From the IMG/VR virus record IMGVR_UViG_3300004151_000006, positions 62,001 to 126,000 of that record: a stretch of 64,000 nt of DNA; one strand, 5' to 3'. Within the stretch, counting starts at the first letter, position 1. Each line of letters opens with the position of its first letter. Shown piece after piece: positions 5,082 through 61,903 of this stretch. The translations under genes were made by a program, and so were the position numbers. The notes beneath the pieces were generated by a model that searched no databases, had not been told where the DNA came from, and saw nothing but the letters and a program-made list of their open reading frames with translations.

Positions 5082-5524
5082 TAGTCTTATCACGAATAGA
5101 GAAATATAATGAATTGATCAATAGAGTGATTGAATATACCACCCTACCCGATGGGTGGGGTGGTCATGATACTGATAAAGCACCAAGTGATCTAGTCATC
5201 AATCAGGCACATCTATGGTTGCATCTTTGTAGTGAATATACAGATATCCCACCACCACACGTTACCTGTTCCACTGATAATGAAATTTGTTTAGAATGGA
5301 AACCAGATGGTGAATATAAAAGTTATTGTAGAATATTTATTAAAAATGATAGTATTTATGGTATGTTTGTGGATTATCAGAATAATAAATACTTTTCACA
5401 ATTACCCTGGTTTCATGCTACTACTCGAAAGGAACAATTCAAACAAATGAGTGTACTTCTTTTAAGAAATATTAACAATCTTGAACCCAAAAAGGAGACT
5501 CTAAGGTATGATGGATTATATTAA
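5075..5524 (+). CDS. hypothetical protein
   Basis: 149 aa, overlaps neighbours; LPDGWGG motif. Confidence 0.65.
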   Translation: MLIVLSRIEKYNELINRVIEYTTLPDGWGGHDTDKAPSDLVINQAHLWLHLCSEYTDIPPPHVTCSTDNEICLEWKPDGEYKSYCRIFIKNDSIYGMFVDYQNNKYFSQLPWFHATTRKEQFKQMSVLLLRNINNLEPKKETLRYDGLY

Positions 5525-6836
5525 TGAATTGCTCAAAGTAATTCAATCAAATCCGATAGCAGCTAGTATCTTTGGTGCATCCACTGTAGCTGGATTATTT
5601 GTATGGGCTAGAAATATTCCAATGCAATTATTTGATTTTATTATAAACCGTATCACAAAGACTCTCACACTTGACAATTCACAACATGGTTACATTATCA
5701 ATATATTGGAAACTTATATTGAAAAAATCTATTATGCACCTAAAAATGATTTTAGTCTATCCGATGATTTAAATTCTAAAAACCAAAATGGTTCTGCTGA
5801 TAAACTAACCATTGGAGAGAATTCTACATTTTATTGTAAATTGAATGGAAAAATATGTAAAATCTCAAAATATATAGCAGGACAAAATACAAGAAATTTT
5901 ACCATGGGAGCAATTGGTCATGGGCGTAATTCTACAGATAGGCAGGTTTATAATTTTACAATAATGACACTGCGAAATATAACTTTGCTAAATTGGTATA
6001 CTGAGATCAGATCAATTCATGATAGGAACTTAAAAAAGCGAGATCATCTATTGTGTATTTTAGATGAAAATAGAGCCACCTGTGAAAAACCCTTGATCAA
6101 TTTTGATAAACTTATTTTACCAAAATCCACTAAATCTCTGGTAGATACTATCATAAATAATCTTGAATCAAATAACACATTTTATCGAGAAAGAAATATT
6201 CCACATAAAGAAGGTATATTGTTATATGGATCCCCAGGTTGTGGAAAATCTCTCTTTATACAGGGTATAGCTAGCAAATATGGATATGTCATACAATATA
6301 TTAATTTAAATCAGGTTGATGAGAATGGTTTGTTAAATATATTCACTACTGAAATGGAAAAGGTCATATTTCTCATTGAGGATATTGATTGTCAAATCAA
6401 TACTTCAATCAATAGAAATGCTCAAATCAAGTCTGAAAATTCAGGTGTATCCTTAGCACTGTTACTCAATATCTTAGATGGTATCTTGACTAAATCTAAA
6501 CAATTTGTAATCGTGACTACAAATAACATTGATGCTCTTGATCCAGCACTCATTCGTGATGGCCGTTTTAACAGTAGGATAGAATTTAAACCATTTACAT
6601 CAGATTTGATTCTTGAATATTTAAAGATGTTCTATGGTGAAAATCTATGCAGTCTTCGTGAAGAACAAATAAAAAGCTTACTCAATAAATATCCAGAAGC
6701 TACCATCACACCTGCTAAACTTGCATCTATCTGTATCAGACATAAACAGGGTTTAAATAATGAAGCAGTCTCTGAATTAAAACAGCATTTAAAAACAACC
6801 ATTATGCTTCAAAAAGAAGGAAACAACAATGGCTGA
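5508..6836 (+). CDS. BCS1-like AAA+ ATPase with N-terminal membrane anchor
   Basis: Walker A GSPGCGKS, Walker B FLIEDID, LLNILDG, VTTNN, DPALIRDGRF; hydrophobic N-terminus. Confidence 0.85.
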   Translation: MMDYINELLKVIQSNPIAASIFGASTVAGLFVWARNIPMQLFDFIINRITKTLTLDNSQHGYIINILETYIEKIYYAPKNDFSLSDDLNSKNQNGSADKLTIGENSTFYCKLNGKICKISKYIAGQNTRNFTMGAIGHGRNSTDRQVYNFTIMTLRNITLLNWYTEIRSIHDRNLKKRDHLLCILDENRATCEKPLINFDKLILPKSTKSLVDTIINNLESNNTFYRERNIPHKEGILLYGSPGCGKSLFIQGIASKYGYVIQYINLNQVDENGLLNIFTTEMEKVIFLIEDIDCQINTSINRNAQIKSENSGVSLALLLNILDGILTKSKQFVIVTTNNIDALDPALIRDGRFNSRIEFKPFTSDLILEYLKMFYGENLCSLREEQIKSLLNKYPEATITPAKLASICIRHKQGLNNEAVSELKQHLKTTIMLQKEGNNNG

Positions 6837-7635
6837 CACATCATTTGAAACATCAAATGCATACTTAAAGAATTTCCTCAGAGATAAGTTATATGCAAAA
6901 TATACAGAGACTAAAGTCGTAGAACATCATTGCGCTATAAATGAAACATCTAGTACTCCAGAATATAATTACATGTTGGATGAAATCATGTTTCCCACTA
7001 CAAATGAATGGAATGAATGTTTTAAGATTATACTAAAAGGATATGGATATACCTCAGCTGAAATAATGAAAGCTAGTGAACAATTTATTTCAAATATTGG
7101 TGGAATGTTTTATCTTGAATGTGAAAAAGATCCCAAATATAAATTCACACATATAGATTACATCACCAAACAGATCACTGTTCTAGTTTCGCATGATAAC
7201 AAACATCCATGGGAACTTAATCTTGAATTTAATGATAAAAAATCTTTAGAAAATGAATTTAAGTTTTTATCTTCAATCCCCGACATTCAACGTGAAACAC
7301 GCCGATTTTTATATGATTACACTGATAATGATAAATTACTATTTAATATAGATTTTCCTAAAGATATCATTACCTTTCTTAATTTTGGTATAAATATAAA
7401 CAGTCGAATAGATTATAAAAGAAATAAAATCATCTTAGAAGCCACAGTGGCTGAATATTCAGGTCAAAAATATTATTATACTGTAACTGGAAGTAGATTA
7501 CGTGGCATGATGCAAAAACAACCCAATCACATGCATACCATTCCCCCAATTGAACGATACTTGAGTGATATTGGGATCCTTAATATGCATGAGATGTATG
7601 TTGAAATGTATCAGGATTTAATGCTCTTAATTTGA
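6829..7635 (+). CDS. hypothetical protein
   Basis: 268 aa ORF overlapping the ATPase stop. Confidence 0.7.
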   Translation: MADTSFETSNAYLKNFLRDKLYAKYTETKVVEHHCAINETSSTPEYNYMLDEIMFPTTNEWNECFKIILKGYGYTSAEIMKASEQFISNIGGMFYLECEKDPKYKFTHIDYITKQITVLVSHDNKHPWELNLEFNDKKSLENEFKFLSSIPDIQRETRRFLYDYTDNDKLLFNIDFPKDIITFLNFGININSRIDYKRNKIILEATVAEYSGQKYYYTVTGSRLRGMMQKQPNHMHTIPPIERYLSDIGILNMHEMYVEMYQDLMLLI

Positions 7636-7758
7636 ATATATCACTATATTTTTATAAAGTATTTTTATCTTATAATACCACCTCTGTTTACAGTCTATTC
7701 AAGTAGTGATCACCATGTAACTATATACCTACTCTTGGTATGTAAAAAGGATATCGAC

Positions 7759-9444: not shown

Positions 9445-10191
9445 CTATTTTGAAACTTTATTCTTTCTGGATTCTACTAAAGTGGTACCCAGGGTTATAT
9501 AACACAGCATCAATTTTTGCACTTCCTCATAGAAAATGATCCCGAATTCCATGAGGAATAAACACATATAAAATCTATCTATAGAATTCTTTGTATCTTC
9601 TTCCTTTTTCAAATTACTAGAAATGTAATCAATAGTATTATTGATAGTCTTTAAGAGATCATCCCAGAATATTAGTTTCATAAGATCCAACATACGATTC
9701 ACTGAGAGTCTCTGATTCAAATATGTGATCTTATCCCAATCCTGGATAGATCTTGATTCACTCATACTCTTGGCTAGATACTTTTCATTCTGAATCACTT
9801 GTATTTTAGAGTACATGAGCTTACCTTGAGAAATATAACTAAAGTCTTCTATCCCGATAGTAGACAAAATATCCTTAGTAAATAGGGTCTTTAGATCTAC
9901 GTATTCTCCTCTCACAGTCTTCCCAAGGGTGATACCCAGGACCTGTGAAAAACGCATTGTACCTTCCCAATGTACCTTCCAATCAGCAAATGGCATAGTG
10001 ATGATATTTACATTCTTTAAAGCTAAAGGATCTATCTCTACTTGTTTAAGTAAAGTCTCCAACTGATCGATATGTAATCTATGATTAGCAAACAATTCTT
10101 TAAACTTGGTGATAAAGTCTTTATATTTAAGCTGCATATTTTTTAACTTCACCATCCCGTCATTGAGAAGGAGTGTGTTCTCTGTATTCAT
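9445..10191 (-). CDS. hypothetical helical protein
   Basis: 248 aa, GGGGAG RBS. Confidence 0.7.
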   Translation of the reverse strand: MNTENTLLLNDGMVKLKNMQLKYKDFITKFKELFANHRLHIDQLETLLKQVEIDPLALKNVNIITMPFADWKVHWEGTMRFSQVLGITLGKTVRGEYVDLKTLFTKDILSTIGIEDFSYISQGKLMYSKIQVIQNEKYLAKSMSESRSIQDWDKITYLNQRLSVNRMLDLMKLIFWDDLLKTINNTIDYISSNLKKEEDTKNSIDRFYMCLFLMEFGIIFYEEVQKLMLCYITLGTTLVESRKNKVSK

Positions 10192-10937
10192 GATCTCCCC
10201 TTAAGTTAAGTCTATAACATAAAAACCATAATAGAACTTTCACACATGAGGTGCCTTCAGGCACCTCATGTACTAATTGATAAAAGATAAGATTTACTTG
10301 AGTAAAAATTTGAAGTGCAGCAATCTCGATCCTCCCTCATCTGGTGTGCAGGCCTACCCCCGGCCTGCACACGCAGACTCGGTTCGGATCTCGTAAGGAA
10401 TAAGAACTAGTACCATAAGATAACACAAAGAATATAAAATAATTTTAATATTCTTATTTTTATTAAATTAAACAATCTTAGTTTACTTTCATTACACTTT
10501 CTAAATAAGACAAAGGAATGAGATAGACAGGAGATGGATAAGACCATCTCCTGTCTATCTCGTCTTAAGAGATCCATATACAAGACAAATACAATATGGA
10601 ACTAGGAGATGTATCTTAAGATACATCTCCCCATATATGATATGAAGATCCCCCCTTCTTCCCCCACCCCAGGCAAAGCGGCACCACCACGGTGTCGTTT
10701 TGTCTGTGGTACAATATTGAGATATTCACCTTGGGTCATCACCCTTAGGGGCTGTCTTTAGTGTGAGTAAATACTCAGGATATACATCCGATGACCTCAG
10801 GTCATCACTATTTAAAATATATATCATAATGATGAAGACTATGTCATATCTCATTGAAATAGTGATCTTGGATCGGCTTATCTCCGTCGAAGACGCCGGA
10901 TGATCTGACTGTTTTTTCTATCCTTAAAAGGAGGATA
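10192..10937. other. ~745-bp structured non-coding region (candidate replication origin or ncRNA)
   Basis: No ORF; stems at 10244-10271, 10344-10372, 10520-10561, 10605-10630, 10670-10706, 10790-10806; AT-rich core ~10420-10505; repeated ATAAGA. Confidence 0.45.
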
Positions 10938-10940
10938 TTG

Positions 10941-11528
10941 ATGTTTGATGCACATTGTGTTGTAGTGGATCCACTACAATCTCCATTTCCTAAATTATTG
11001 TATCATGATACATCTATTGAATGTTTGATCTTTTGTACCAATGATTGTTCATTCATGGGATATGATCATACACACTTACCTTTTTTATTTGGTAAAGATT
11101 TATTGTGTCGATATGATGTTAAATTTGTATTGAATAATGGTTCTAGTCATTCCATTGAGTTGGATAAATTATATAAATATTGTACTGGTGAATTATTGTC
11201 CAATAAACTATCTGGGGATTCTAGATTAGCCATAGTCAATAGTGATAATTCACTTACTATGATTAATTGTGCTATAGATCCAAGGGAAGTATTTTTTGAA
11301 CTTTGTGCTAATGAAGAATATCATTTGAAAATCATTGATTTCTTAGATGAAAGGTTATATAAAGGGGTTACTTTTTATATGAAGCATGAATTCCAATTGG
11401 TTGAATATATATGTAATACAAAAGGTAATCATAAATCTATCCACACTATTGCTGCATTTCCTAAGATGGGATATCAACAATTTCATATGTTTGATCAATA
11501 TCTCAACAAAGAAGGAGAAAGCTCATGA
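10941..11528 (+). CDS. hypothetical protein (tandem paralogue 1 of 3)
   Basis: AAGGAGG RBS; EFQLVEYI motif shared with the next two genes. Confidence 0.65.
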   Translation: MFDAHCVVVDPLQSPFPKLLYHDTSIECLIFCTNDCSFMGYDHTHLPFLFGKDLLCRYDVKFVLNNGSSHSIELDKLYKYCTGELLSNKLSGDSRLAIVNSDNSLTMINCAIDPREVFFELCANEEYHLKIIDFLDERLYKGVTFYMKHEFQLVEYICNTKGNHKSIHTIAAFPKMGYQQFHMFDQYLNKEGESS

Positions 11529-12040
11529 TAGATCAAAACACACCGTTATATGTGGTGGATATGGTCCAAGATCTCTATGTCAAATTGGATATGGTAGATC
11601 GTGAAAGATTGTTTATACCACTCAGTATCACTCAAGTATATCGTTCATATAACGTATTGTTTAAGCTCGATAAAGATAATTTCAATATATCATTCAATAT
11701 GTTTATTGAGAGATATTGTCCACCATTATATCAAATCTTACGTCAGGATAAATATAAGAATAGTTTCACTATTGAACAAATGTGTCAGCCTTTATTTATA
11801 TCCCCATTGAATGAAATATTCTTAAATAATTTACAACAAATACATCCGGTGCATGGATTTCAATTACGTGAGTTTGATGAATTTACTGTAATGGAATACA
11901 TCTACAATTATGATCTTAGTTATTTTCATTGTAAAGAAATTTGTAAGATACCAACTCCTGAGATAGTCAGTATCATGAAAAGTAAACATAAACTTTTCTT
12001 AGAGTCTTTGAAGATCAGATCTATCACTCCATGGTGCTAG
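11525..12040 (+). CDS. hypothetical protein (tandem paralogue 2 of 3)
   Basis: EFTVMEYIY..KEI motif. Confidence 0.7.
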   Translation: MIDQNTPLYVVDMVQDLYVKLDMVDRERLFIPLSITQVYRSYNVLFKLDKDNFNISFNMFIERYCPPLYQILRQDKYKNSFTIEQMCQPLFISPLNEIFLNNLQQIHPVHGFQLREFDEFTVMEYIYNYDLSYFHCKEICKIPTPEIVSIMKSKHKLFLESLKIRSITPWC

Positions 12041-12547
12041 ATGTATCATGATCCAGCATTTAGGACTGATGTCAAAATCATTGAGATGAATAAAGGGCTG
12101 CCATATTGGGAACAGAGTCCGAGCACGATGAACTATCATGTACCAAGTAATATCAATAAATTATATCGAATGTATTGTATGGAATTCTATTTTCCCAATG
12201 GATATTGTGTCATTGAACCATTGGAAGACTTCATTAGAATGGCATGTCCAACACTCATGAATATACTCTCTCAATATAGTGAAAATAGTTTCTATCCAAT
12301 TTTTAATATTTGTATGCTGATGACATCTATTGAACATGTAGAAGAATTTAAACATCAATTAAAAGAAAGATATCTTTCGATTGACGAAGTAATAAAATTC
12401 ACGGTAATGGAATATATTTATGTTGAAGATATGAAATATATATGGAGTAAAGAGATCTATAGTTTTCCATACCCTTCAAAATTTGATATCATCAAACAGT
12501 TGCATAACAAGATCACTGCATGTGATCAGGAGGATCCCAGTGTCTGA
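12041..12547 (+). CDS. hypothetical protein (tandem paralogue 3 of 3)
   Basis: KFTVMEYIY..KEI motif. Confidence 0.7.
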   Translation: MYHDPAFRTDVKIIEMNKGLPYWEQSPSTMNYHVPSNINKLYRMYCMEFYFPNGYCVIEPLEDFIRMACPTLMNILSQYSENSFYPIFNICMLMTSIEHVEEFKHQLKERYLSIDEVIKFTVMEYIYVEDMKYIWSKEIYSFPYPSKFDIIKQLHNKITACDQEDPSV

Positions 12548-16622: not shown

Positions 16623-18674
16623 ATGGCTGAATTCATCAAATTCAAAACTGCTGTAGCTAAACAATTTAAACTGATGTGTGAAAGTAATATATTGTATCGG
16701 GTAGATGTAAGTAAAGATGAATTGTGGGAAACTTATTTGGAATCTTATCCTGAAGAAACTAATCAAATTTATAAAGTGCGTAGAGAATATGATTGTAATT
16801 ATTGTAAGCGATTTATTCGTACAATTGGTGATGTGGTGATCATTACTCCTGATAATAAGTTGATGTCTATCTGGGATATCGATGTGGATGTACCCCATTT
16901 TCAATTGGTAGCTGATAAGATGTCTGAGTTGGTAAAGTCAAAACCTATTTATAGTAAATTCATGCATATTGAACGTGTGGCTGGTGTAGATAAGAATTTC
17001 TATGAAATCATCAATCCTGATGAAAGTAAAAGTACTGGTACATATGAACACTTCTTTGTAAATATCCCTGACATTTATGTTGCATCTGAAACTACTATCA
17101 ATGAAATTACTAATATGGTACGTACTGGTCAACAAGTATTTAAGCGTGCGTTGGATACTATCAACATTGAAGCTTTGGATGTAGTATTGGAACTCATTGA
17201 TCAAAATACTTTAGAACGTGGTGAAGAATTCAAAGCTATCGTTGAACGATTCAAAGATTTAAAGATCGAATATGAAAAATTAACCAATGAAGAAGAAAAA
17301 GAATTGTGGGCATGGAATACAAGTGTTAATACAGCCAATGGTCTTGTACATATTCGAAATCATGCTATTGGTACATTACTCATTGATTTATCTGAAGATA
17401 CTGAATTGGATGAAGCAGTACGTAAGTTTGAATCGGTGATGGCACCTGAGAATTATAAACGTACCAAATCTGTTGTTACAAAGAGTATGATTGATAAAGC
17501 CAAAAAGACTATCACTGAACTTGGATATACTTCTGCTTTGGAACGTAGACCAGCCACTATCAATGATATCACTGTCAACAATATCTTGTTCGTAGATAGA
17601 AACATTACGCCAAAACTCAATGGTGATGTATTTGATATGCTTGCTAAGACTACTAAGGAAAAGAAACAGTCTTTTGATAAAGTAGAAGATGTGACCATCG
17701 ATACATTTGTAAAAGATATTTTACCCAATATCAGTACATTGGAGATGATGGTGGAAAATAAACATAGCAATAATTTCATGACACTCTTGACAGCTAAAGA
17801 TCCCACTGCTAAATATATGTTTAAATGGGATAATCCTTTCTCTTGGTCATATCGTGGTGAGACAGCAGATGCTATCAAAGAACGTGTAAAGGCTGCAGGT
17901 GGTAGTGTGACTGGTGATCTGTGTATCAGATTGGCATGGGATAATGAAGATGATTATGATCTCCATGTACGTGAACCTAATGGATATGAGATCTTCTTTA
18001 TAAATAAAGGACGTATGTCTCCAAATGGTGGTATGTTGGATGTGGATAAAAATGCTCAAGGATATACTCTTACAACTACACCTGTGGAAAATGTCATCTA
18101 TACTAATCGTAGAAACATGCAAGAAGGTATCTATCTAGTATATGTACATAACTATTGTCAGCGTCGTAATGTGGATTATGGGTTTGAATTGGATATAGAT
18201 TATCTTGGTAGTGTGACAAAATTTAGTTGGGATAAGCTGTTTAAAACTAATGAACGAGTCAATGTGGTAGCATTTAAATATACATATGAAACTGGAATTG
18301 AAATTATGGATTCTATCCCAGCTAGTGATATGTCTAAGATCATTTGGAATATACCCACACATAAATTTGTAAAAGTGAAAACTATGATGTACTCACCTAA
18401 CTATTGGGATGATCATGGTGTTGGTAATAAGCATTATTTCTTTGTACTCAATGATTGTAAATGTGATGAAGCTGTCCGTGGTTTTTATAATGAATTCTTG
18501 AAAGAAGAACTTCATCTTCATCGTAAAGTGTTTGAAGTGTTGGGTGATAAACTCAAGATGGGTGTTGAAGATAATAGCACTCTTTGTGGTGTTGGATTTT
18601 CTAGTACACTTAGAAATGAAATTGTGTGCCGTGTGACTGGGGCATTCACTCGAGTCCTTCGAGTGAAGTTTTAA
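16623..18674 (+). CDS. conserved large-phage protein with YfaP/DUF2135-like domain
   Basis: CNYC motif; LAWDNEDDYDLHVREPNG...LDVDKN...VENV segment; AAGGAGG RBS. Confidence 0.6.
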   Translation: MAEFIKFKTAVAKQFKLMCESNILYRVDVSKDELWETYLESYPEETNQIYKVRREYDCNYCKRFIRTIGDVVIITPDNKLMSIWDIDVDVPHFQLVADKMSELVKSKPIYSKFMHIERVAGVDKNFYEIINPDESKSTGTYEHFFVNIPDIYVASETTINEITNMVRTGQQVFKRALDTINIEALDVVLELIDQNTLERGEEFKAIVERFKDLKIEYEKLTNEEEKELWAWNTSVNTANGLVHIRNHAIGTLLIDLSEDTELDEAVRKFESVMAPENYKRTKSVVTKSMIDKAKKTITELGYTSALERRPATINDITVNNILFVDRNITPKLNGDVFDMLAKTTKEKKQSFDKVEDVTIDTFVKDILPNISTLEMMVENKHSNNFMTLLTAKDPTAKYMFKWDNPFSWSYRGETADAIKERVKAAGGSVTGDLCIRLAWDNEDDYDLHVREPNGYEIFFINKGRMSPNGGMLDVDKNAQGYTLTTTPVENVIYTNRRNMQEGIYLVYVHNYCQRRNVDYGFELDIDYLGSVTKFSWDKLFKTNERVNVVAFKYTYETGIEIMDSIPASDMSKIIWNIPTHKFVKVKTMMYSPNYWDDHGVGNKHYFFVLNDCKCDEAVRGFYNEFLKEELHLHRKVFEVLGDKLKMGVEDNSTLCGVGFSSTLRNEIVCRVTGAFTRVLRVKF

Positions 18675-19208: not shown

Positions 19209-19607
19209 ATGCTTATTAAATCTCCACAGTTCGAAATCGATATCTCAAATAATTATATGATGTATTTCACTAAATTATCAGTATCAATACAATCAATGGT
19301 TAAATATATGAATGATATAGCTAAGACTTCAGATAATATTCATTATCGCTTAATTAAACAAAATGTACATGAAAAATATGATCCTGGTGTATCTCACATG
19401 TGGACTTATTACGATCATGAATTTAATACACTCATTGGTATAAAGTTATTTAAAGATGGTATGATACAGTGTCATTGTACTAATGGCAAAGAGCATTCAT
19501 TTCACGAATGCTCTTCTTTAGCTGGACGTAGGACTATGTTAATCACTATAAATGATTTTTATTTTTGGTTTATATCTGGATTTATTAAAAAAGGGAGAAA
19601 CCCATGA
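19209..19607 (+). CDS. hypothetical protein
   Basis: Start revised to lie after the palindrome. Confidence 0.55.
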   Translation: MLIKSPQFEIDISNNYMMYFTKLSVSIQSMVKYMNDIAKTSDNIHYRLIKQNVHEKYDPGVSHMWTYYDHEFNTLIGIKLFKDGMIQCHCTNGKEHSFHECSSLAGRRTMLITINDFYFWFISGFIKKGRNP

Positions 19608-20269
19608 ATAAATTGGACCTGACTCAATATGTGGAATCAGCATCATTTGATCGGATGATACCAGCTTTCACCATTAAAGGTACATGTAGTGTAGCTATTA
19701 ATAGTGACACTAATAATTCTAGGGAACTTGCAGAACAATATACTGAGTATTGTCTACGTGTTTGTAAATCATTCCATAAAATAAAGATAAATAATGCACC
19801 ACCTGAAATGAAATATTACTACGGACAGGAGATTATATCTCTTCCCAAAATGTTAAACAAAAGAGATCAGCAAGAACTCCATACTGTATTGAAATATCCA
19901 CTTGTGAGTTTCGGACTAGTATTAGAATCACCAACTCCACCAATATTTTCTCCGAATGGTAATACCCTTGTACCTGCTAGAATGAAAAGTGTACCATCTG
20001 GTGAAATATATCTAAGTTACGCTTTAGAAAATAAAACACATATTACCGAGGTTATATCTGATTGGATAGTTAAGCTTCAACATCCTGAAGAGTTTAAATC
20101 AGATGAAGATCCCATAGTAAGTTGGCACCATGATACTTATTCTACAAGTATGTTATTTATCGTGTACAATGAATTACCTACTTTGGAAAATATTAAAACA
20201 GTTATTCAAGATGTTTTAATCATAACTCGAATGTTTCCAATTATAACACCATATGAATCTTTAGTTTAA
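19604..20269 (+). CDS. hypothetical protein
   Basis: AGGGAG RBS, ATGA overlap. Confidence 0.65.
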   Translation: MNKLDLTQYVESASFDRMIPAFTIKGTCSVAINSDTNNSRELAEQYTEYCLRVCKSFHKIKINNAPPEMKYYYGQEIISLPKMLNKRDQQELHTVLKYPLVSFGLVLESPTPPIFSPNGNTLVPARMKSVPSGEIYLSYALENKTHITEVISDWIVKLQHPEEFKSDEDPIVSWHHDTYSTSMLFIVYNELPTLENIKTVIQDVLIITRMFPIITPYESLV

Positions 20270-21095: not shown

Positions 21096-21127
21096 ATGGA
21101 TGGATCCCCTGTAGGGGATCCATCCAT
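21096..21127. repeat. 15-bp stem/2-nt loop inverted repeat
   Basis: ATGGATGGATCCCCT-GT-AGGGGATCCATCCAT. Confidence 0.9.
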
Positions 21128-21170: not shown

Positions 21171-22277
21171 GTGAACCATTTGGAGGTTATTGTGGAAAAT
21201 ATTTCACACGATTTAGTAAAACATAGAAAATTAAATATTATTATGGATGGACAATTTGGTTCTACTGGTAAAGGGAGTTTAGCTGCATGGTTGGGTACTA
21301 TATCACCAGTTGAAATATACGTAAGTAATCTTAGTCCAAATGCTGGACACACCTATGATTTACAAGATGGATATGGTCCTAGAGTAGTAAAACAATTACC
21401 TATTGGTGGGATTATTAATAAACGATCACAGATTTATTTATCTCATGGATCAATCATCGAACCAAAAGCTTTATTAAAGGAAATAGAAACATTTAATGTT
21501 GATAAAGACCGAATATGCATTGATCCTAGAGCTGCTATTGTTACCGATGAATGTAAAGCTTTAGAAAAAGATAATTCTTCTTCAGTAGCTAAGATAGCTA
21601 GTACACAGAGTGGTACTGGTGTAGCACTTAGTCAAAAAATCATGCGTAGTGCTAAATTAGCAGAAGATATTCCAGAGTTAAAAGATATGATACATGAATT
21701 TGATTTAATGGAACATTTACAATTAGGATCAACTGCAGTTATGGAGACATCACAGGGTTTTGATCTTGGATTAAATTATGGACTTAGTTATCCACATTGT
21801 ACCTCTAGAGATGTGACACCATCTCAATGTTTAGGTGATGCAAAAGTGCATCCAAAATTCTTAGGTAATGTATTTCTTACTTTAAGAACATATCCAATAC
21901 GAGTGGGTAATTTGAAAGTTGGAGATATTACATATGGTGAAAGTGGACCATTTTATCTAGATTCTAAAGAGCTGAGTTGGGAAGAATTGATGGTCACACC
22001 AGAGAAAACTACAGTCACTCAACGTATACGTAGAGTAGCTACATTTTCACCAACACAATTGAAAAGAACGATATATTACACTAAACCAAAACATATATTT
22101 TTGAATTTTATCAACTACATCTTAACTGAAGAATATATTGAAATTATAATAGATGCATTCAGACAAATAAAACAATTTCCAAGTTTATTAGGATTCGGTA
22201 GGAGTATACTTGAAATATCACGAGCAAGAAATTTAACAGAATCCAAAGATATCATGTATGCACAATTATGTAAATAA
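21171..22277 (+). CDS. purZ: PurZ-type succinylaminodeoxyadenylate synthetase (PurA homologue)
   Basis: DGQFGSTGKG (Ser in place of the PurA catalytic Asp), SPNAGHT, QGFDL..YPHCTSRD, RTYPIRV, TTVT.R.RR, FLNFINY; short ~360 aa form. Confidence 0.8.
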   Translation: MNHLEVIVENISHDLVKHRKLNIIMDGQFGSTGKGSLAAWLGTISPVEIYVSNLSPNAGHTYDLQDGYGPRVVKQLPIGGIINKRSQIYLSHGSIIEPKALLKEIETFNVDKDRICIDPRAAIVTDECKALEKDNSSSVAKIASTQSGTGVALSQKIMRSAKLAEDIPELKDMIHEFDLMEHLQLGSTAVMETSQGFDLGLNYGLSYPHCTSRDVTPSQCLGDAKVHPKFLGNVFLTLRTYPIRVGNLKVGDITYGESGPFYLDSKELSWEELMVTPEKTTVTQRIRRVATFSPTQLKRTIYYTKPKHIFLNFINYILTEEYIEIIIDAFRQIKQFPSLLGFGRSILEISRARNLTESKDIMYAQLCK

Positions 22278-23856: not shown

Positions 23857-24213
23857 ATGTCGACTCCCATCAAGCAGTTTTTCATTCACCGTTTGGATAT
23901 CTTCAACTGGGTATGTTTCATGGTGATATTACTCACCGTAGAGTATATCTCGTACTGTATTGCACCAGACAATATACTCGTATTCATTGGTACAATTTCA
24001 GTAATCATGTTTCTCATATGTCTTTGGTTTACTTATCTTAGATCACCTAGACGAACATATCGACCCAAATGGATCAAGACATATCTTGAGTTCATGGGAT
24101 ACCATATTTATTCTGAGACAGAACTTAAAATCATCTTTCAATGCAACATAGTGGTGTGTATCATCACAATTGTTATGTTAGTAGAATGTATCTATTTCTC
24201 ATATCGTCCGTAA
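23857..24213 (+). CDS. membrane protein (3 TM)
   Basis: Three hydrophobic segments; followed by a 13-bp stem at 24225-24255. Confidence 0.6.
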   Translation: MSTPIKQFFIHRLDIFNWVCFMVILLTVEYISYCIAPDNILVFIGTISVIMFLICLWFTYLRSPRRTYRPKWIKTYLEFMGYHIYSETELKIIFQCNIVVCIITIVMLVECIYFSYRP

Positions 24214-24513
24214 TCAAGCACAGGGGAGAGGCACCCATCTCCTGGGTGCCTCTCCTGACCTGGCTGTTCACCCCAAACAAGGAAGCTCATGGTGCCCACA
24301 TACACCATAGGTATAAGACAGCTGATCCTCATCTATCCTACACCCATAGGATATTTGAGATGAAATATATTTAGATCTATATTTTTTTTTCATGATGAAA
24401 GAAATAAACTATATACTGTGAGTGATCCCATTATATATTCAAAACATCTTATGTCTATAGATACTCACACTAGTAATAGTGTTTACTATATCATTTGGAA
24501 AGGAGTCAAGCAA

Positions 24514-25305
24514 ATGGATGCATCTTGGAAATTTGTAGTGGAGGCTATGTCTGTAGTCGATGGTCGTATGATCAAAGGACTCAAGCCTGATGCTCAAGGA
24601 TACTACCATGATATCCCTTTGATGGGACTAGGTATGTGTGCTCGTAGTGGTATCTATTACAATCCTAAACCTATCATCGATGCTATCCGTTTACCAAAGA
24701 GTACATTCAATATGAAACTCACTGATGGTAATCTCTTTGGATGTATCAATCATCCTCCTACCTTTAAGAAAGAAGATATCCCTCTCATGTTAGAGATAGA
24801 TCAAAAAGAAGTCTCTCATCATTTCAAAAAGATCTATAGTGGTGATCTAGGTAATGACACTGGACTCATCTTAGGATGTCTTCGTCCTTGGGGTCCCTAT
24901 GGTCAGTACTTAGAGACCTCACTGCAAGATGAACATGTCAATACCTCATTCTCTGTACGATCATTGTGTAAACAGTATATGGAGCCCAACACTAGACGTA
25001 TGTGTCGTGATGTCGAGATCTTAGTGACGTTTGATTGGGTCAATGCTCCTGGATATAAAGAGGCTAGTAAACGCTATGTACCTGCTATGGAGAGTTACAC
25101 TATTGATATCATCCCTGAAGAGTTCATTGCTGCTGTAGAGATCTGTGGATGTGAGTCTATCAAAGACATTGATCTCATGAGAGTGTTTGGTATGAGTCAG
25201 ATCGAGATCGGTGAGATCCGTGGTGAGTATAGAGCTGGAAGAAAGTCATTCATTGGCACTGATGGGGATAGACATAGCTTGGTCCATGCACTGTTGGGAT
25301 GTTAG
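24514..25305 (+). CDS. prohead (head maturation) protease, phiKZ gp175-like
   Basis: GCINHP, VSHH, SFSVRSL, TFDWVNAPG motifs; candidate self-cleavage site AME-S; AAGGAG RBS. Confidence 0.85.
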   Translation: MDASWKFVVEAMSVVDGRMIKGLKPDAQGYYHDIPLMGLGMCARSGIYYNPKPIIDAIRLPKSTFNMKLTDGNLFGCINHPPTFKKEDIPLMLEIDQKEVSHHFKKIYSGDLGNDTGLILGCLRPWGPYGQYLETSLQDEHVNTSFSVRSLCKQYMEPNTRRMCRDVEILVTFDWVNAPGYKEASKRYVPAMESYTIDIIPEEFIAAVEICGCESIKDIDLMRVFGMSQIEIGEIRGEYRAGRKSFIGTDGDRHSLVHALLGC

Positions 25306-25313
25306 GAGGATAT

Positions 25314-26051
25314 ATGTTTAAAGTACCTAAGATGCTTGATGGTGAAATCGAATCACTCCCTGTAGATCCTTTGGAGATCCCAGAGCCTACACCAGAATCT
25401 ACTCCAATTCCAGTGAAGACAGAAGATTACAGTGACCAATATTTACATAGTCTCACTGATGCTAAACTCATCCCTACTAAAGCTCTCACTATTGAGCATA
25501 CTGATATCATGGGTCCTATGTCAAAGTGTCCAGTCTTTATCCATGAGCTCCAAGATGGGAGTCTGCATTGTATCGCATATGTGATAGGTCAGATCGGTGA
25601 TGTCAACGATTATCTTGATCTCATTGATATGATCACAGTACTACGTGAGCAAGATAAGATGCGAGTATATATTGATAGTCCTGGTGGATATGTGGCTACT
25701 GGAGCACATGTGGCTAGTGCTATGTCTTTGTGTAATGGTGAAGTCACTACTGTAGCAAGAGGTTTTTGTGCATCAGCTGCATCCCTCATGTGGTCAGCTG
25801 GACACAAACATCAACTCACCCCATTTTCTTTATTCATGTACCATATGAGTAGTCATGGTGATATGGGTAATAGCTTAGGTATCCGCAATCGTGCTGATGA
25901 TATGATCAGATATGTCAAGACTACATTACTCCGTGTACCTTTAGAAAAAGGTCATATCACTCCTGAAGAATTAGATCAGATTTGTATCAAAGGTGAAGAT
26001 CAATATATTGATGCAAAGACTATGTATCAGCGTCTTCGTAAAGGAGTCTAG
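25314..26051 (+). CDS. ClpP-like serine protease
   Basis: YIDSPGG, CASAASL (catalytic Ser), FMYHM (His), EDQYIDA; acidic Pro-rich N-terminus. Confidence 0.85.
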   Translation: MFKVPKMLDGEIESLPVDPLEIPEPTPESTPIPVKTEDYSDQYLHSLTDAKLIPTKALTIEHTDIMGPMSKCPVFIHELQDGSLHCIAYVIGQIGDVNDYLDLIDMITVLREQDKMRVYIDSPGGYVATGAHVASAMSLCNGEVTTVARGFCASAASLMWSAGHKHQLTPFSLFMYHMSSHGDMGNSLGIRNRADDMIRYVKTTLLRVPLEKGHITPEELDQICIKGEDQYIDAKTMYQRLRKGV

Positions 26052-26054
26052 TAT

Positions 26055-26825
26055 ATGAGTCAATCACCTTCACCATATGGGTTTTTAAAAGGATTGATGA
26101 TCAATATGGATGACATCCCTGCTGATCCTTTGGTAGTAGAAGAGACTCCCATTGAACCTATTGATACTCATCCTGATGAGACACCTGATATCACACATCG
26201 TGTAGATGGAGTCACTATAGGTACTGAGAGTATCTCATCTTTCTATCAATCATTTCAAATGGAAAAACAAGATCCACTCACTATAGAACAGAATGCTCTC
26301 AATACTCCTAGTAAAATGGGTATGTTCAACACTGTAAAACCCATGAATCACATACCCCAGATACGTACTACTGACCAGGTCAATTTCAGAGTATTCCTCA
26401 AAGCTCAACATGAATTTACAGATGAGTATATCACCAGGTTATGTAGATTCTTAGATAGTCGTACACCCAATCAAACTATCACATTTTATCTTGGTAATAG
26501 TTTATCATCTAGATACACCATGATCATTGGATCTGTCTTGTCATCTATCATGTCTTGTCCAGCTAAGACGATAGCTATTGCTGCTGGATGTTGTGGTGTA
26601 CCTGAGTCTATGATGTGGTGCTTTTGTCAGGAAAGACATATCGCTGAATATAGTGCACTCACTTTTGGTGGTACCAATCTCATCACCCACTATTCTTTTT
26701 ATAAATACTATTTAGAAGTCTGTTTTGAAAGAGCTGTGGAAGTGGGTATATTGAGTAAAGAGCAAGTGGATACTATTTGGAATGAAAATAAAGAGATCAT
26801 GATCACATATGTAGAACAGCAATAG
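26055..26825 (+). CDS. degenerate ClpP paralogue (ClpR-like, catalytic residues lost)
   Basis: TIAIAAGCCGVPESMMW aligns to TTVARGFCASAASLMW; LTFG replaces FMYH; acidic N-terminus. Confidence 0.6.
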   Translation: MSQSPSPYGFLKGLMINMDDIPADPLVVEETPIEPIDTHPDETPDITHRVDGVTIGTESISSFYQSFQMEKQDPLTIEQNALNTPSKMGMFNTVKPMNHIPQIRTTDQVNFRVFLKAQHEFTDEYITRLCRFLDSRTPNQTITFYLGNSLSSRYTMIIGSVLSSIMSCPAKTIAIAAGCCGVPESMMWCFCQERHIAEYSALTFGGTNLITHYSFYKYYLEVCFERAVEVGILSKEQVDTIWNENKEIMITYVEQQ

Positions 26826-26833
26826 TGATATAT

Positions 26834-26861
26834 TGGGATGGGGGCCCAAGCCCCCATCCCA
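26834..26861. repeat. 12-bp stem inverted repeat followed by early promoter (26882-26902)
   Basis: TGGGATGGGGGC-CCAA-GCCCCCATCCCA. Confidence 0.85.
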
Positions 26862-26931
26862 TATGCTGATCATCTTTTTACAAATATATATAATCAAAGT
26901 GAAGATAAACTTAAAGCCTAGGAGAAACACC

Positions 26932-27228
26932 ATGGCAAGTTATAATTTTAGCCTCCCCGGCCATTGCATGTCTTTCATTTCGAAGTTGCGGAAGCATCGT
27001 AATGACCCGCGTCGTTTGGTGGATTACATTCTTGTAGCCTTCGATACCACTGATCCTACCCATCCAAAGGAGCACCCCATGTGGGAGCATCTGGAGGAAG
27101 CCATTGCTGTCTGCAAGCAATATGGGTGGCAGTTCAGGACTATGTCCTGGAAGGATCAGGGGATCCAGGCTGTGGCAATATCCCCAGAAGAAGGATATTA
27201 CCATTCCAAGTTTCAACACAGCCATTAA
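26932..27228 (+). CDS. hypothetical protein
   Basis: AGGAG RBS; elevated GC. Confidence 0.65.
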   Translation: MASYNFSLPGHCMSFISKLRKHRNDPRRLVDYILVAFDTTDPTHPKEHPMWEHLEEAIAVCKQYGWQFRTMSWKDQGIQAVAISPEEGYYHSKFQHSH

Positions 27229-27254
27229 ACCTTCTAACCTAAACGAGGTATATC

Positions 27255-28136
27255 ATGCAGCGCATTATCACTCACTCCGGTAAGTTTCACGCTGACGAAA
27301 TCATTGCATGTGCCATCCTTCGCATGCTCAATCCACAGATCGAGATCATCCGTACCCGCGACACCAGCATCATCACCGACGATGATATCGCGGTCGACTT
27401 CGGCGGGATCTATGATCCCGAGAAGTATCGATTCGACCATCACCAAAAGGACGCCCCCAAGCGTCCCAATGGCAAGTCCTACTCCAGTGCCGGCATGGTC
27501 TGGAATTCCCCCCAGGTCCACTGCATGATGATGCAACTGGGCATGCCCAGCAATCTGCTCTCCGAAATCGTAGCTAAGGTTGATGAGAGCTTCATTGCCC
27601 ACATCGATGCGATCGACTCCGGGGAAGGATCTCTCGAAGGCTACAGTTTCAGCGCAGCCATCGGGTCCTTCAACACGTTCAATCTCCAGGATGGAGAAGA
27701 CGTGTGTTTCATGAAGGCCCTGGACTTTGCGCTGCAATTCCTGCCAAATATCATCCATGAGACTTATCTCCGCCTCAGTGAGGCGGAGTATGTCCGCGAT
27801 GCCGATACGACGTTCGATGGCAAGGTCATCGTCCTTGGTCGGGGGGTCCCATGGATCGAGACCGTCCTGACCGAGGCGAAGTTCGACAATGCCGAGTTTG
27901 TCATGTTCCCTCATATTGATGGGGTGACATGGAGACTCCAGGCCATCCCCAAGGAGATGGGGAGCTTCGAGAAGCGTCGAGCTTTGCCTGCCTCTTGGGG
28001 CGGATTGAATGGTCAAGACCTGGAATACGTCACCGGCGTGAAGGGTGCCGTGTTCTGTCACAAGGCCCTGTTCATTTGCGGTGCTAATAGCTTTGAAGCC
28101 ATGTTTGACATGGCTGGGTTGGCAGTGTCGCAGTAA
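27255..28136 (+). CDS. MYG1 (UPF0160) family DHH 3'-5' exonuclease
   Basis: THSGKFHADE, VDFGG.YD, FDHHQ, SSAGMVW, FCHKALF; markedly GC-rich. Confidence 0.9.
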   Translation: MQRIITHSGKFHADEIIACAILRMLNPQIEIIRTRDTSIITDDDIAVDFGGIYDPEKYRFDHHQKDAPKRPNGKSYSSAGMVWNSPQVHCMMMQLGMPSNLLSEIVAKVDESFIAHIDAIDSGEGSLEGYSFSAAIGSFNTFNLQDGEDVCFMKALDFALQFLPNIIHETYLRLSEAEYVRDADTTFDGKVIVLGRGVPWIETVLTEAKFDNAEFVMFPHIDGVTWRLQAIPKEMGSFEKRRALPASWGGLNGQDLEYVTGVKGAVFCHKALFICGANSFEAMFDMAGLAVSQ

Positions 28137-28143
28137 TTTATAT

Positions 28144-28177
28144 CTGCATGGGGGCCCATCCTTGGGCCCCCATGCAG
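28144..28177. terminator. 15-bp stem between convergent genes
   Basis: CTGCATGGGGGCCCA-TCCT-TGGGCCCCCATGCAG. Confidence 0.8.
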
Positions 28178-28190
28178 TACTGTGATTATT

Positions 28191-30221
28191 TTATTTTTTC
28201 ATTTCTTGGATCACCATATCTAAAGTCTGGGTTTGATCAGATAAGGTGTGTATAGCTTTTGTAGAATGTTGCATAGCTGTAAGATTTTGTTTAGCTATAT
28301 CTGCTGTAGAGATGATGAGTCTACCTATTTCTTCAGCAGTAGCAGATTGTTCTTCAGCAGCTATAGCAATGGATTGTATTTGACTAGTAGTACCATCAAT
28401 AAGAGTATAGATCTCAGAGAGTGTATCACCACCTATCTTGACACGTTTATCTATTTCATTGATAGCTGAAGCTACTTTCTCAACATAATTAATACTTTTT
28501 AATGTACTATCTTGAACAGTGGTAATGGTGGTTTCAATATCACGTGTAGCTACTTGTGTACGTTCTGCTAACTTTCTTACTTCATCAGCCACTACAGCAA
28601 AACCTTTACCAGCTTCTCCGGCGTGAGAACTTTCGATTGCCGCGTTAAGTGCTAATAAATTAGTCTGATCTGCAATATGTGAAATAGTTTCAATGATCTC
28701 ATTGATACCACCGACTTGATCACCTAATACATGAATATCATTTTTAAGGATGATAGCTAACTCTCGGATACCATTGATTTCACTGATGATAGTTTGAATA
28801 ACAGTAGTTCCATCATGTGCTTTCTGTTTAGCTATAGATGCTGATTCACTAGTGTGACTGCTATTTTTAGCTACTTCTAAGATGGTAGCATTCATTTCTT
28901 CTACTGCTACTGCTGTTTCATCCATCTGAGTAGATTGTGCTTCACTACCACGAGTAGATTGTTCTATTTGTGTGGATAAAGATTCAGTGTGATTAGCTAT
29001 CTCTCTGACTGTAGTGTCTAATTTGATAGCAGCTTGGTGGATACCATCTTTGAGTGCTTGCTCAGCAGCAGCTTTAAGCCGATTGACATCTGTGATATCT
29101 TGGATGAGTTCAATATATCCGATGGTATCACCATGTCTATTTTTGAGTATGGAAGTATCCACCATGTAATCATTTTCTGGTATGCCAGGTATATTGAAAT
29201 GGCATTTTGTATTACCTTGTTTACATTGTTTTACTGCGCAATCAGTTTCATTACAGATGGTAGTACCTAAAGATATACAAGCTTTTCCTATATAAGTTTC
29301 TTTATCAAGATGAAAAGTCTTGAGAGCATGATCATTAAGATATGTGATATATTTTTCATTACTGACTACCATGATAGGAAAACTAATAGAGTTCAATACA
29401 TTTTCATACCAATGAAGTTTATCCACTACTGTATCCAATGCTTTATTGAGATACTTTGATGTTTTACCTATTTCATCATCACTGTTGACCTGGAGCCTTG
29501 TAGTGAAATCACCTTGAGAAAAAATGATAGCTGCATTAAGTATCTTCTTTAAAGGTACACTGATCTTTTGTACAATGAAGATACTGATAGCTATACCAAT
29601 CATAAAAGATAAACCAAGTACAATCAATATAGTATCCATATCACGATTGACAATACGTTGTGTCTCTATCTTAGCTAGTGAAGTAGATTCTTTAGTATCT
29701 TTGATGATAGCTAAGATCTCATTGAACATTTGACCGTTGACACGATTTCCAACAGTATAACAATAATCAAAAGCATTTTGATATAAATCAAGATTATTAA
29801 GATCATTTTCCCATGTATGTATCATATCAAATATCTTATTGTTTTCTCTTTTAGCTTCATCTAAAGTGGTAGTGAATTTCTCCCATAATACCTTTTCTTT
29901 ATATCCTCTGGGTATAGTACTGAGTGTTTTGATTATTTCAGTATATTTATCTCTATGTAATTTGATATCCTCGTATTGTTTAGCTCTTTGTTCTTTAGTG
30001 ATATTTCTTTTAAGCAACATAGTCTGTGCTAACAATATTGATTGAAAATGATAGGGTAAAATATTGAGTGCTTCTAAACTTGGTAGATGTGTTTCTGTGA
30101 TAGTGCTGAGTGATTCCTCTGCATCCTGCATCCCAGTGTATCCTACTATCCCACTAATAGATGAAATACAGATCAGGGCCATAGTACCTATGATCAGTTT
30201 AAGTTTTAAAGAGATGTGCAT
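28191..30221 (-). CDS. methyl-accepting chemotaxis protein (TM-4HB sensor-TM-HAMP-PAS-MA)
   Basis: [12 protein letters not shown]...[21 protein letters not shown]; HAMP PLKKI...GDFT..DEIG; PAS-like segment; two TMs; AGGAGG RBS. Confidence 0.93.
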
Positions 30222-33720: not shown

Positions 33721-35967
33721 ATGTTGATGTTTGAATCAGATTTTACAAGACCGTTTTCTATTAAGTTGGGCCATGATGTATCTAGGACATTTTATCCTAG
33801 ATATCATGCCAATACAAAAAATGATAGTTTTATAAGAGTATGTATGATATTGAAAAATATGGGCGTAGAAAACCATTTATTCCCTTTAGGTATTTATCAT
33901 CATGAATTATTAGATGTAGATCCAAGATCTAATGATCTCTCAGATGAACAAAGACTCATGATAATGACAGAGATTAAGATTAATCCGTGGTATTATTTTC
34001 GAGAGGTAGTGAGAATCCCCACTACTGGTGGTGAACCAATCCCATACATTTTATCGAGAGCAAACTTAGCTCTTACGTGGTGTTATTACAATGGTATTGA
34101 TGTTGGCTTAGTACAACCTCGTCAAACTGGTAAAACTATTGGTACACAGGCTATCATGTCACATGTTATGTATTTCTTAGGATTTCACTTTGAAATAGCC
34201 ATGCTCACTAAAGATGGTGCCTTAATTAAAGACAACGTAAGACGTCTTCGGGATATTAAAGAAACATTACCAAAATGGATGATACTTAAAAATTACAATG
34301 GTAAAGATGAAGATAATAAAGAAGGACTTTCTTATACTTTTTTAGAAAATATCTATAAAACTTTTACCAATGCTATTGATGATGCAGGTGCTGATAAACT
34401 CGGTCGTGGTATGACTTCTCCCACTCAACATTGGGATGAAATTGCTTTCTTTAGATATATCTGGACAACATTTCCTGCTGCAGTGGCAGCTACTGGTGCT
34501 GCTCGAAAGAATGCTGCTGAACGTGGACTTCCTCATGCTAACATATATACCACTACTGCAGGTAACCCAGATAAAAGATCTGGTAAATTTGCTATGGATC
34601 TTTTTTTAGATTCATGTTTATTCACTGAGAAACTTTATGATTGTAAAGATCTTAATGATCTTCATAATACCGTAATTAAAAATAGTGTCCAAGGTACGAA
34701 GTCTGTCTATTGTGTATATTCACATAGACAATTGGGTTTCACTGATGATTGGCTTAGAGAACAGATTTTACGTACTAAAGCTACACAAGAAAAAGTGGAT
34801 AGAGATTATTTGAATTTATGGAAATCTTCTTCTGATGATGGACCTATTCCACCAGATTTATTAGATAAAATCAATAGAAATGTTATTGAACCCCTGTATA
34901 GTGAAGTGAAAGATAGATACATTCTTAATTGGTATCTCTCTGAACAAATGGTCAATTCTGAAGAATTTAAAAATCGTACGCTTATCGCTGGGCTAGATAG
35001 TTCAGAGATGATAGGTAGAGATTTTACTACATTTGTCATTCTTGATTCGTATGACATGAGTGTAGTTGGTACACTTCGGTGTAATGATTCTAATGTTATT
35101 AATCTTGGTAATCGCATAGCACAGATTATGTTGAAGTATAGAAAGATGATATTAGTACCAGAATGTAAATCTACTGGAGTAGCTATTGTAGATGCTATCA
35201 TCAATGTACTCAAAGAAAATGGTATCAATCCTTGGCAACGTATCTTTAATTTGGCAGTACAAAAGAAAGATGAAAGGGAGTTTGAAAATTTTAATATTCA
35301 TACAGAACCCACTGAAGGTCTTAATAAGAAGTTGTTTGGATTTAGGACTACTGGAGGTACTGGTTTATTTAGTCGTAATATGCTTTATAAATCCACAATG
35401 CTAAAAGCTATATATCTTAACTATTCCCGTGTCCATGATGAGATGCTCATTAAAGAATTCAATGGACTTCGTACTAAAAATGGTAGAATAGATCACAATG
35501 AAGATAGCCATGATGATATGATCATCTCTTATTTATTGGCTTGTTTCTTTATATTCTTTGGTAAGAATCTTCATCATTATGGGATCAAACCAGAACTCTT
35601 TTTACATAAAATTACCAATGATGAAGATGGTGTGGATAAGTATAAAAAACAAGAACAATTGGAAGTTCGTAGTCATATAGCCCAATTAGAACATGCTGTC
35701 AGAAGATCAACTTCGCATCTTGTACGTATGAGTTACGAACGTGAACTCAACGAAATAAAGAGATATCTTGATGATGGGATCATTGATGTAAAACCTATTG
35801 CCACTACTCAGTTTAAACGTGATAGTGAATTGGTGTCTACTTTTAATAAACCCGATACTGAGCAAGCAGTTAACTTATTATCTAGTGTATACACTGCCAA
35901 TAATATGAATACTTCAAAATACCAATATCCTCAATATAGGGTAGGCTATGGTGGCATAGTCAATTGA
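33721..35967 (+). CDS. terL: terminase large subunit, phiKZ-type
   Basis: NPWYYFREVVR, QPRQTGKT (Walker A), WDEIAF (Walker B), TTTAG, GLDSSE, RIDH...HDD nuclease motifs. Confidence 0.9.
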   Translation: MLMFESDFTRPFSIKLGHDVSRTFYPRYHANTKNDSFIRVCMILKNMGVENHLFPLGIYHHELLDVDPRSNDLSDEQRLMIMTEIKINPWYYFREVVRIPTTGGEPIPYILSRANLALTWCYYNGIDVGLVQPRQTGKTIGTQAIMSHVMYFLGFHFEIAMLTKDGALIKDNVRRLRDIKETLPKWMILKNYNGKDEDNKEGLSYTFLENIYKTFTNAIDDAGADKLGRGMTSPTQHWDEIAFFRYIWTTFPAAVAATGAARKNAAERGLPHANIYTTTAGNPDKRSGKFAMDLFLDSCLFTEKLYDCKDLNDLHNTVIKNSVQGTKSVYCVYSHRQLGFTDDWLREQILRTKATQEKVDRDYLNLWKSSSDDGPIPPDLLDKINRNVIEPLYSEVKDRYILNWYLSEQMVNSEEFKNRTLIAGLDSSEMIGRDFTTFVILDSYDMSVVGTLRCNDSNVINLGNRIAQIMLKYRKMILVPECKSTGVAIVDAIINVLKENGINPWQRIFNLAVQKKDEREFENFNIHTEPTEGLNKKLFGFRTTGGTGLFSRNMLYKSTMLKAIYLNYSRVHDEMLIKEFNGLRTKNGRIDHNEDSHDDMIISYLLACFFIFFGKNLHHYGIKPELFLHKITNDEDGVDKYKKQEQLEVRSHIAQLEHAVRRSTSHLVRMSYERELNEIKRYLDDGIIDVKPIATTQFKRDSELVSTFNKPDTEQAVNLLSSVYTANNMNTSKYQYPQYRVGYGGIVN

Positions 35968-48397: not shown

Positions 48398-48471
48398 ACA
48401 AATTCATGTGTTTTTAAATATATATTATTCGAGTGATAAACATTATTTCTTCTCAACGGAGGAGTGTACAT

Positions 48472-49530: not shown

Positions 49531-49538
49531 TTCTTAGT

Positions 49539-49615
49539 GGCCGGGTAGCACAGAGGCAGTTTGCGCCCCGCTTACACCGGGGAGGTCGGGATTTCAAAAT
49601 TCCCCCTGGCCACCA
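49539..49615 (+). tRNA. tRNA-Val(UAC), CCA encoded
   Basis: Acceptor GGCCGGG/CCTGGCC, anticodon arm CCCCG-CTTACAC-CGGGG, T-loop TTCAAAA, 3' ACCA. Confidence 0.85.
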
Positions 49616-49621
49616 ATCAAT

Positions 49622-49694
49622 TCCTCGGTAGCACAATTGGCAGTGCTGGCGACTGTTAATCGCCCCGTTGGCAGTTCGAGTCTGTCCCGAGGAG
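49622..49694 (+). tRNA. tRNA-Asn(GUU), CCA not encoded
   Basis: Acceptor TCCTCGG/CCGAGGA, anticodon arm GGCGA-CTGTTAA-TCGCC, T-arm GGCAG-TTCGAGT-CTGTC. Confidence 0.92.
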
Positions 49695-61884: not shown

Positions 61885-61903
61885 GTGTATAACTCCTATC
61901 GGA

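Follow-up and report, generated by a model that had tools for sequence, protein, structure and literature searches.

We present here an intact PurZ gene, predicted to encode the enzyme that starts synthesis of the DNA base 2-aminoadenine (Z), in a φKZ-like jumbo phage known only from metagenomes. None of the usual helper genes of PurZ was found in the roughly 100 kb of its contig that we read. By sequence, specificity residues, predicted fold and phylogeny the protein is an ATP-type PurZ rather than a PurA or a PurZ0, and it belongs to a previously undescribed stand-alone ('orphan') PurZ clade, in which none of 21 loci has a helper gene nearby. Members of this clade sit on large AT-rich phage contigs and in the chromosomes of Micavibrio- and Bdellovibrio-like MAGs. 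In no paper in the library searched was PurZ linked with jumbo phages, a 2026 jumbo-phage review does not mention it, and the latest PurZ survey describes seven groups of Z-phages with helper genes, its text mentioning neither jumbo phages nor bacterial chromosomal copies (PMC12884076). The enzyme family is therefore known; what is new is the stand-alone state of the gene, its jumbo-phage host and its bacterial relatives.

The purZ gene and its phage

The stretch of DNA analysed (hereafter the window) is 64,000 nucleotides long and corresponds to positions 62,001-126,000 of JGI contig Ga0066602_10000002 (286,688 bp), of which a 300,343-bp version also exists. An uninterrupted ORF runs from 21171 to 22277 on the + strand (368 aa from GTG 21171). 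However, the public gene call (P0001, present on 6 contigs) is 361 aa and starts at GTG 21192, a Shine-Dalgarno-like GGAGG lies at 21182-21186, five bases before this GTG, and an exact look-up of the 368-aa translation found nothing. We therefore take 21192 as the likelier start, giving a coding sequence at 21192-22277 (361 aa plus stop); the in-frame GTG at 21171 would add 7 residues. A perfect 14-bp hairpin at 21096-21127 separates the gene from an upstream small membrane ORF (stop at 21093), with a fold energy of -30.3 kcal/mol (z -5.35; 0 of 200 shuffles as stable). It has no T-run and is not called by a terminator scan, and may possibly be a transcript boundary or processing site. A promoter and terminator scan of the window found nothing above the shuffle expectation, and an Rfam scan found no family.

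To assess what kind of genome carries the gene, we first compared 6 kb around it with GenBank phages by megablast, which gave no match at the DNA level. The terminase (33721-35967), however, is 34-36% identical to those of φKZ, 201φ2-1 and RP12, and precomputed Pfam calls on the parent contig show a φKZ gp29-type sheath (phiKZ_gp29PR), a tail-tube protein, the φKZ-type prohead protease Peptidase_S80, a RuvC, a DNA_pol_B_exo1 protein and a divergent DnaB. The genome, of about 34% GC and on a contig of 287-300 kb, above 200 kb, is therefore that of a φKZ-like jumbo phage, although none of the ORFs scanned, in searches not aimed at these proteins, matched a chimallin or PhuZ. No cultured or described Z-phage is this large, and the largest GenBank phage records with a significant match are 81-89 kb. 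The purZ gene lies among virion genes, not replication genes. Pfam searches of its immediate neighbours at E up to 1 gave only chance-level hits, including DUF4478 (a nucleotide nucleosidase domain) at E 0.11 for ORF 19604-20266, which we do not accept.

Specificity residues, predicted fold and phylogeny

Pfam recognises only the generic adenylosuccinate-synthetase family (PF00709, E 2.9e-21), whereas PHROGs places the protein in the PurZ family (PHROG 1211, E 7e-56). Against solved structures the best matches were φVC8 PurZ (1.4e-42) and S-2L PurZ (2.8e-40), followed by Pyrococcus horikoshii PurA (1e-33), PurZ0 (6e-28) and E. coli PurA (2e-9, over the N-terminal part alone). An AlphaFold model (pLDDT 91.2, pTM 0.91) matched S-2L PurZ best (PDB 7ODX, TM 0.84/0.86), consistent with the short (about 340-370 aa) form of the adenylosuccinate-synthetase fold. 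Of the NCBIfam models, the PurZ model NF038379 scored highest, at 217.8 bits. This is below its curated cutoff of 300, but the PurZ of Ochrobactrum phage OH, which has datZ, mazZ and dpoZ beside it, also fails at 241, so the cutoff is narrow. The second-best model was the archaeal-type PurA model NF003295, at 180 bits.

To investigate nucleotide specificity, we took the specificity residues from the S-2L structure paper (PMC8342488) and a metagenomic association study (bioRxiv 10.1101/2025.10.22.683976) and read them off an alignment of 129 sequences. Every published PurZ specificity residue is kept. In φVC8 numbering, F12, S14, T262, P233, Y244, W252, F295 and Y298 are all conserved; in S-2L numbering, R240 and V241 are kept and Asn stands at the position of Q308, where PurA and PurZ0 have Asp. 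F22, S24 and T273 of the 361-aa protein are invariant or nearly so in both Z-cluster and orphan PurZ. The motif FLNFINY supplies F306, Y309 and N308 of the adenine pocket for ATP, sites at which PurZ0 and PurA have M/K, Q/V and D. The PurZ-only loop after PIRVG, which pushes V241 against C2' and so excludes ribonucleotides (PMC8342488), is represented by the GNLKVGDITYGESGPFY insertion together with V238, both absent in E. coli PurA. The protein deviates at no column that is at least 93% conserved, and only 4 columns separate the orphan clade from Z-cluster PurZ, none of them a known ligand contact.

The initial annotation had described the gene as a PurZ without visible partner genes in a φKZ-like jumbo phage, on the basis of GSTGKG in place of the PurA GDEGKG, RTYPIRV in place of AYTTRV, and NFxN in FLNFINY in place of the GTP-specifying TKLD. 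These motifs are indeed present, and the observation held. However, it had also read the Arg in TTVTQRIRR, where S-2L has Leu, as a hybrid PurA/PurZ0-PurZ signature. This does not hold, since the position is Arg in 65 of 71 Z-cluster-linked PurZ and the Leu of S-2L is the outlier.

We next built a tree, as the initial annotation had proposed. With E. coli PurA and a fecal-phage PurA as outgroup, PurZ0 splits off first (100/100), and the window protein then falls in a clade of 31 orphans (95/85), inside a group of 41 sequences that also holds three Z-cluster PurZ (98/91). The split from PurZ0 and PurA (100/100) was obtained under both LG+G4 and C20. The path from the root passes successive Z-cluster groups with UFBoot support of 94-98, and C20 gives the same order. 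An AU test did not reject orphan monophyly (p 0.41). Descent of the orphans from within cluster-linked PurZ is the favoured reading but is not proven, as an AU test also did not reject a tree in which all non-orphan PurZ form one clade (ΔlnL 18.9, p 0.118), and the rooting rests on bacterial and phage PurA plus PurZ0, without archaeal PurA. A differently framed AU test (p 0.0007) was confounded by other partner-less rows and is disregarded.

The closest characterised proteins are the PurZ of Vibrio phage φVC8 and cyanophage S-2L (PDB 6FM1, 7ODX), which share the fold (TM 0.80-0.86), the short architecture, Ser in place of the catalytic Asp, the 2-amino pocket and ATP-adenine pocket residues, and the loop insertion next to V241. 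They are, however, only 32-35% identical, and their genes sit within about 3 kb of datZ and mazZ (plus a PolA-type dpoZ in φVC8-like phages; S-2L uses a PrimPol) in 39-45 kb podo- and siphoviruses, whereas this gene stands alone in a phage of about 290 kb with a family-B polymerase. PurZ0 of actinophages (Wayne, Ghobes, Archimedes; PDB 7VF6) is likewise a short PurA-like enzyme with Ser at the catalytic position, but keeps a PurA-like guanine-nucleotide pocket and travels with DutZ, DmtZ and DUF5664 (PMC12884076), none of which applies here. The archaeal short adenylosuccinate synthetase of P. horikoshii (PDB 5K7X) has the same compact fold (TM 0.81/0.86) but uses IMP and GTP, and the window protein lacks the Asp and the guanine-binding motif.

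Stand-alone loci and chromosomal relatives

To test for partner genes, we took reference DatZ, MazZ, DUF550-DUF5664, DpoZ and PrimPol from S-2L, Ochrobactrum phage OH, Vibrio phage J2, Acinetobacter phage Bhz9 and Burkholderia phage Bm1, and PurZ0-type partners (DutZ, DmtZ, DUF5664) from phages Wayne and Archimedes. Neither these nor PurB found anything above chance in phmmer and profile searches of the six-frame translation of the window, confirming the absence of datZ, mazZ and dpoZ from these 64 kb. The reference searches likewise found nothing in the additional contig pieces, and precomputed Pfam calls extended the result to about 100 kb (positions about 43,900-144,431), or 35% of the contig with about 187 kb left unread, in which there is no DatZ, MazZ/DUF550, DUF5664, HD, MazG, Dut/dUTPase, NDT or PolA gene. 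The polymerase is instead φKZ-type family B, with DNA_pol_B_exo1 and divDNAB at contig positions 136-144 kb.

A search of 5.8 billion proteins found 5,346 relatives. The nearest non-self hits are 50-58% identical, closer than any cultured-phage PurZ (40% at most), and several sit on contigs of 146-300 kb; cluster-member names were uninformative. No orphan-clade member occurs in a cultured phage. We retrieved 80 loci from IMG/VR and 11 from GTDB genomes and scanned their flanks. Outside the wider 41-row clade of the window protein, 63 of 71 loci carry DatZ, MazZ or DpoZ, usually within 3 kb, whereas inside that clade only the three basal loci do, and none of 21 orphan loci does (Fisher p 2e-9). 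A DatZ profile search, run to find DatZ on jumbo-size contigs, returned 461 hits, of which the best 120 all sit on contigs of 91 kb or less. Orphan phage loci lie on markedly AT-rich DNA (median GC 0.33 against 0.53 for Z-cluster loci, Mann-Whitney p 5e-7), although this comparison is not corrected for relatedness and may be biased by the use of an AT-rich query.

The neighbourhoods of the orphan genes are unrelated to one another and include T4-like replication genes, unknowns and, in one relative (locus L112:9272-13516, protein P0007, a 56% identical PurZ), a cluster in which purZ is flanked by an HD-domain protein, a radical-SAM enzyme, a sulfotransferase and an APS kinase, which may be a different nucleotide or DNA modification module. 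The HD-domain gene abuts purZ, but its product is not recognised by the DatZ profile, looked PgpH-like by eye, and has no homologue in the window or any other locus. At loci L076 and L078 (about 10000-12100) a PurZ-type (ATP-pocket) enzyme sits next to DUF5664-like and Dut-like genes, the partner set described for PurZ0 phages, so partner sets appear to mix across the PurZ/PurZ0 divide.

Several orphan-clade genes are chromosomal, in Micavibrio-like, Alphaproteobacteria/UBA6503 and Bdellovibrionales MAGs (GTDB loci L012:5078-7083, L013 and L014 about 5276-7660, and L018:5977-7023), among housekeeping genes (hflX, cmk, rpsA and rho in the Micavibrio and Alphaproteobacteria loci). On a 1.0-Mb Micavibrio MAG contig the order is MazG, PurZ-like, an inositol-monophosphatase-family gene, HflX; in two Alphaproteobacteria MAGs the arrangement cmk, PurZ-like, Ham1/RdgB, rpsA recurs; and on a 610-kb Bdellovibrionales contig the gene lies between ferrochelatase and DUF6782 genes. 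The Micavibrio protein, the one checked residue by residue, has the full PurZ signature and matches S-2L PurZ at 4e-52. In the Micavibrio and Alphaproteobacteria loci a house-cleaning NTP pyrophosphatase is thus adjacent, the same pairing as MazZ with PurZ, which is either a hint of Z chemistry in cells or a sign that the clade has a salvage role.

Possible roles of the enzyme, and other cargo of the phage

Our analysis demonstrates the integrity of the gene, its family, its residues, its fold (from a model), the type of phage and the absence of partners in 100 kb, whereas the enzymatic activity, completion of the pathway by the host and the presence of Z in virion DNA are inferred from homology. 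The enzyme (N6-succino-2-amino-2'-deoxyadenylate synthase) is very probably active and PurZ-like, with dGMP- and ATP-dependent chemistry, although this rests on sequence and on no assayed member of the clade. In the mechanism we propose, it would condense dGMP with aspartate during infection, using ATP or dATP as the phosphate donor, to give dSMP, and host adenylosuccinate lyase (PurB) and nucleotide kinases would finish the route to dZTP. As most polymerases do not discriminate A from Z (PMC8342488), the family-B polymerase of the phage is not expected to tell dZTP from dATP and would place 2-aminoadenine opposite T, so that some Z in the phage DNA is the default expectation. No dATP-removing enzyme (DatZ, MazZ-2, Dut-like) and no Z-selective PolA were found in the part read, and the expected outcome is therefore partial rather than complete A-to-Z replacement of this AT-rich genome. 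In agreement, incomplete Z-cluster constructs in E. coli gave lower substitution than the full cluster, and the loss of datZ and mazZ acted synergistically (PMC8342488). We hold this explanation with no more than even confidence. The sub-cutoff NCBIfam score, the lack of partners, the position among virion genes and the chromosomal relatives, in which genome-wide Z is not expected, all weigh against it, and in the Ettwiller preprint 3 of 17 adenylosuccinate-synthetase genes on contigs that were not dZ-modified did not cluster with PurA.

A doubtful but surviving alternative is that the orphan clade is a repurposed pool-balancing enzyme, shifting purine nucleotides salvaged from host or prey (for example as a dGMP sink and dATP consumer, or with relaxed use of GMP, IMP or dIMP) without making Z a stable part of virion DNA. 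The chromosomal genes next to MazG or Ham1/RdgB, the occurrence in unrelated large phages without conserved neighbours, the AT-richness of the orphan phage loci and the higher scores of orphans against the archaeal-type PurA model (140-185 bits, against 119-139 for Z-cluster PurZ) are consistent with such a role, as both predators and lytic jumbo phages recycle foreign nucleotides. However, the residues that recognise the 2-amino group and exclude the 2'-OH are all conserved, ordinary host enzymes carry dSMP on to dZTP once it is made (PMC8342488), so that some incorporation is hard to avoid, and no enzyme that removes dZ nucleotides was seen. Complete replacement of adenine, with helpers in the unread part of roughly 187 kb or helpers unrelated to DatZ, MazZ and DpoZ, appears unlikely. 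The enzyme signature is complete, genes of one pathway are often scattered in jumbo phages, partner sets are replaceable by convergence (PMC12884076) and one relative has an HD-domain gene abutting purZ. Yet there are no partners in 100 kb or in any of 21 orphan loci, the best DatZ hits are confined to contigs of 91 kb or less whereas PurZ hits include contigs of 146-300 kb, the HD protein is not DatZ-like, and the replicative polymerase is not PolA. An ordinary PurA carried as an auxiliary metabolic gene, as huge phages often carry purine-synthesis genes (PMC7162821) and Pfam sees only PF00709, is effectively excluded, because the catalytic Asp13 is Ser, TKLD is replaced by NFINY, E. coli PurA matches only weakly and a long branch with 100/100 support separates the protein from PurA. 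A GTP-using PurZ0 or hybrid is likewise effectively excluded, since its only support was the Arg in TTVTQRIRR, the PurZ0 references (Wayne and Archimedes) have M, Q and D where this protein has F, Y and N, PurZ0 branches off with 100/100 support and no DutZ, DmtZ or DUF5664 homologue is present in the part read.

The interpretation in the initial annotation, a jumbo phage with fully or partly Z-substituted AT-rich DNA or else a repurposed enzyme, is thus only partly supported: the PurZ identity, the φKZ-like jumbo host, the lack of a known partner nearby and the smaller size of the Z-phages hold, the hybrid signature does not, and the repurposed enzyme gains some weight from the bacterial chromosomal relatives. 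Its analogy with the uracil-DNA jumbo phages AR9 and PBS1 concerns large phages in which one canonical base is, or could be, replaced through nucleotide-pool engineering; the base and enzymes differ, and the replacement is demonstrated for those phages but only inferred as a possibility here. Z-DNA biology currently rests on small sipho- and podoviruses whose purZ is tied to datZ, mazZ and dpoZ, and a conserved, intact PurZ that travels alone changes that picture: either 2-aminoadenine is used much more widely and more flexibly than thought, including partial substitution, or PurZ chemistry has a second role in purine salvage. Which of these is true bears on phage defence evasion, on how far metagenomic gene markers can predict modified DNA, and on enzymes for making Z-DNA. 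A more speculative and rather unlikely possibility is that PurZ has escaped its three-gene cluster and acts alone, or with unrecognised helpers, to put 2-aminoadenine into the DNA of large AT-rich phages, including this φKZ-like jumbo phage, and possibly even into the chromosomes of predatory Micavibrio- and Bdellovibrio-like bacteria, which would make Z-DNA far more widespread than the small phages known today and give the first cellular Z-DNA.

The window also holds other genes of note. A 676-aa methyl-accepting chemotaxis protein (28191-30221, - strand; 4HB_MCP, HAMP, PAS and MCPsignal domains) is an unusual cargo gene for a phage. An island of higher GC (about 24000-28200; 0.40-0.46 against about 0.33) holds the φKZ-type prohead protease, a ClpP-like protease and unknown ORFs, with long ORFs on both strands at 27234-28136, none with a family match. 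A 683-aa DUF8224 protein (16623-18674, + strand; PHROG 1735, E 9e-252), 46-48% identical to proteins of φCbK-like Caulobacter phages, Ralstonia φRSL1 and many others, is a very widely conserved large-phage protein of unknown function. Further cargo genes encode a radical-SAM protein (42308-43330, +), an HNH endonuclease directly followed by tRNA-Val and tRNA-Asn (48433-49695, +), a DsrE-like protein (61516-61947, -) and a GH108 lysozyme (62372-63118, +).
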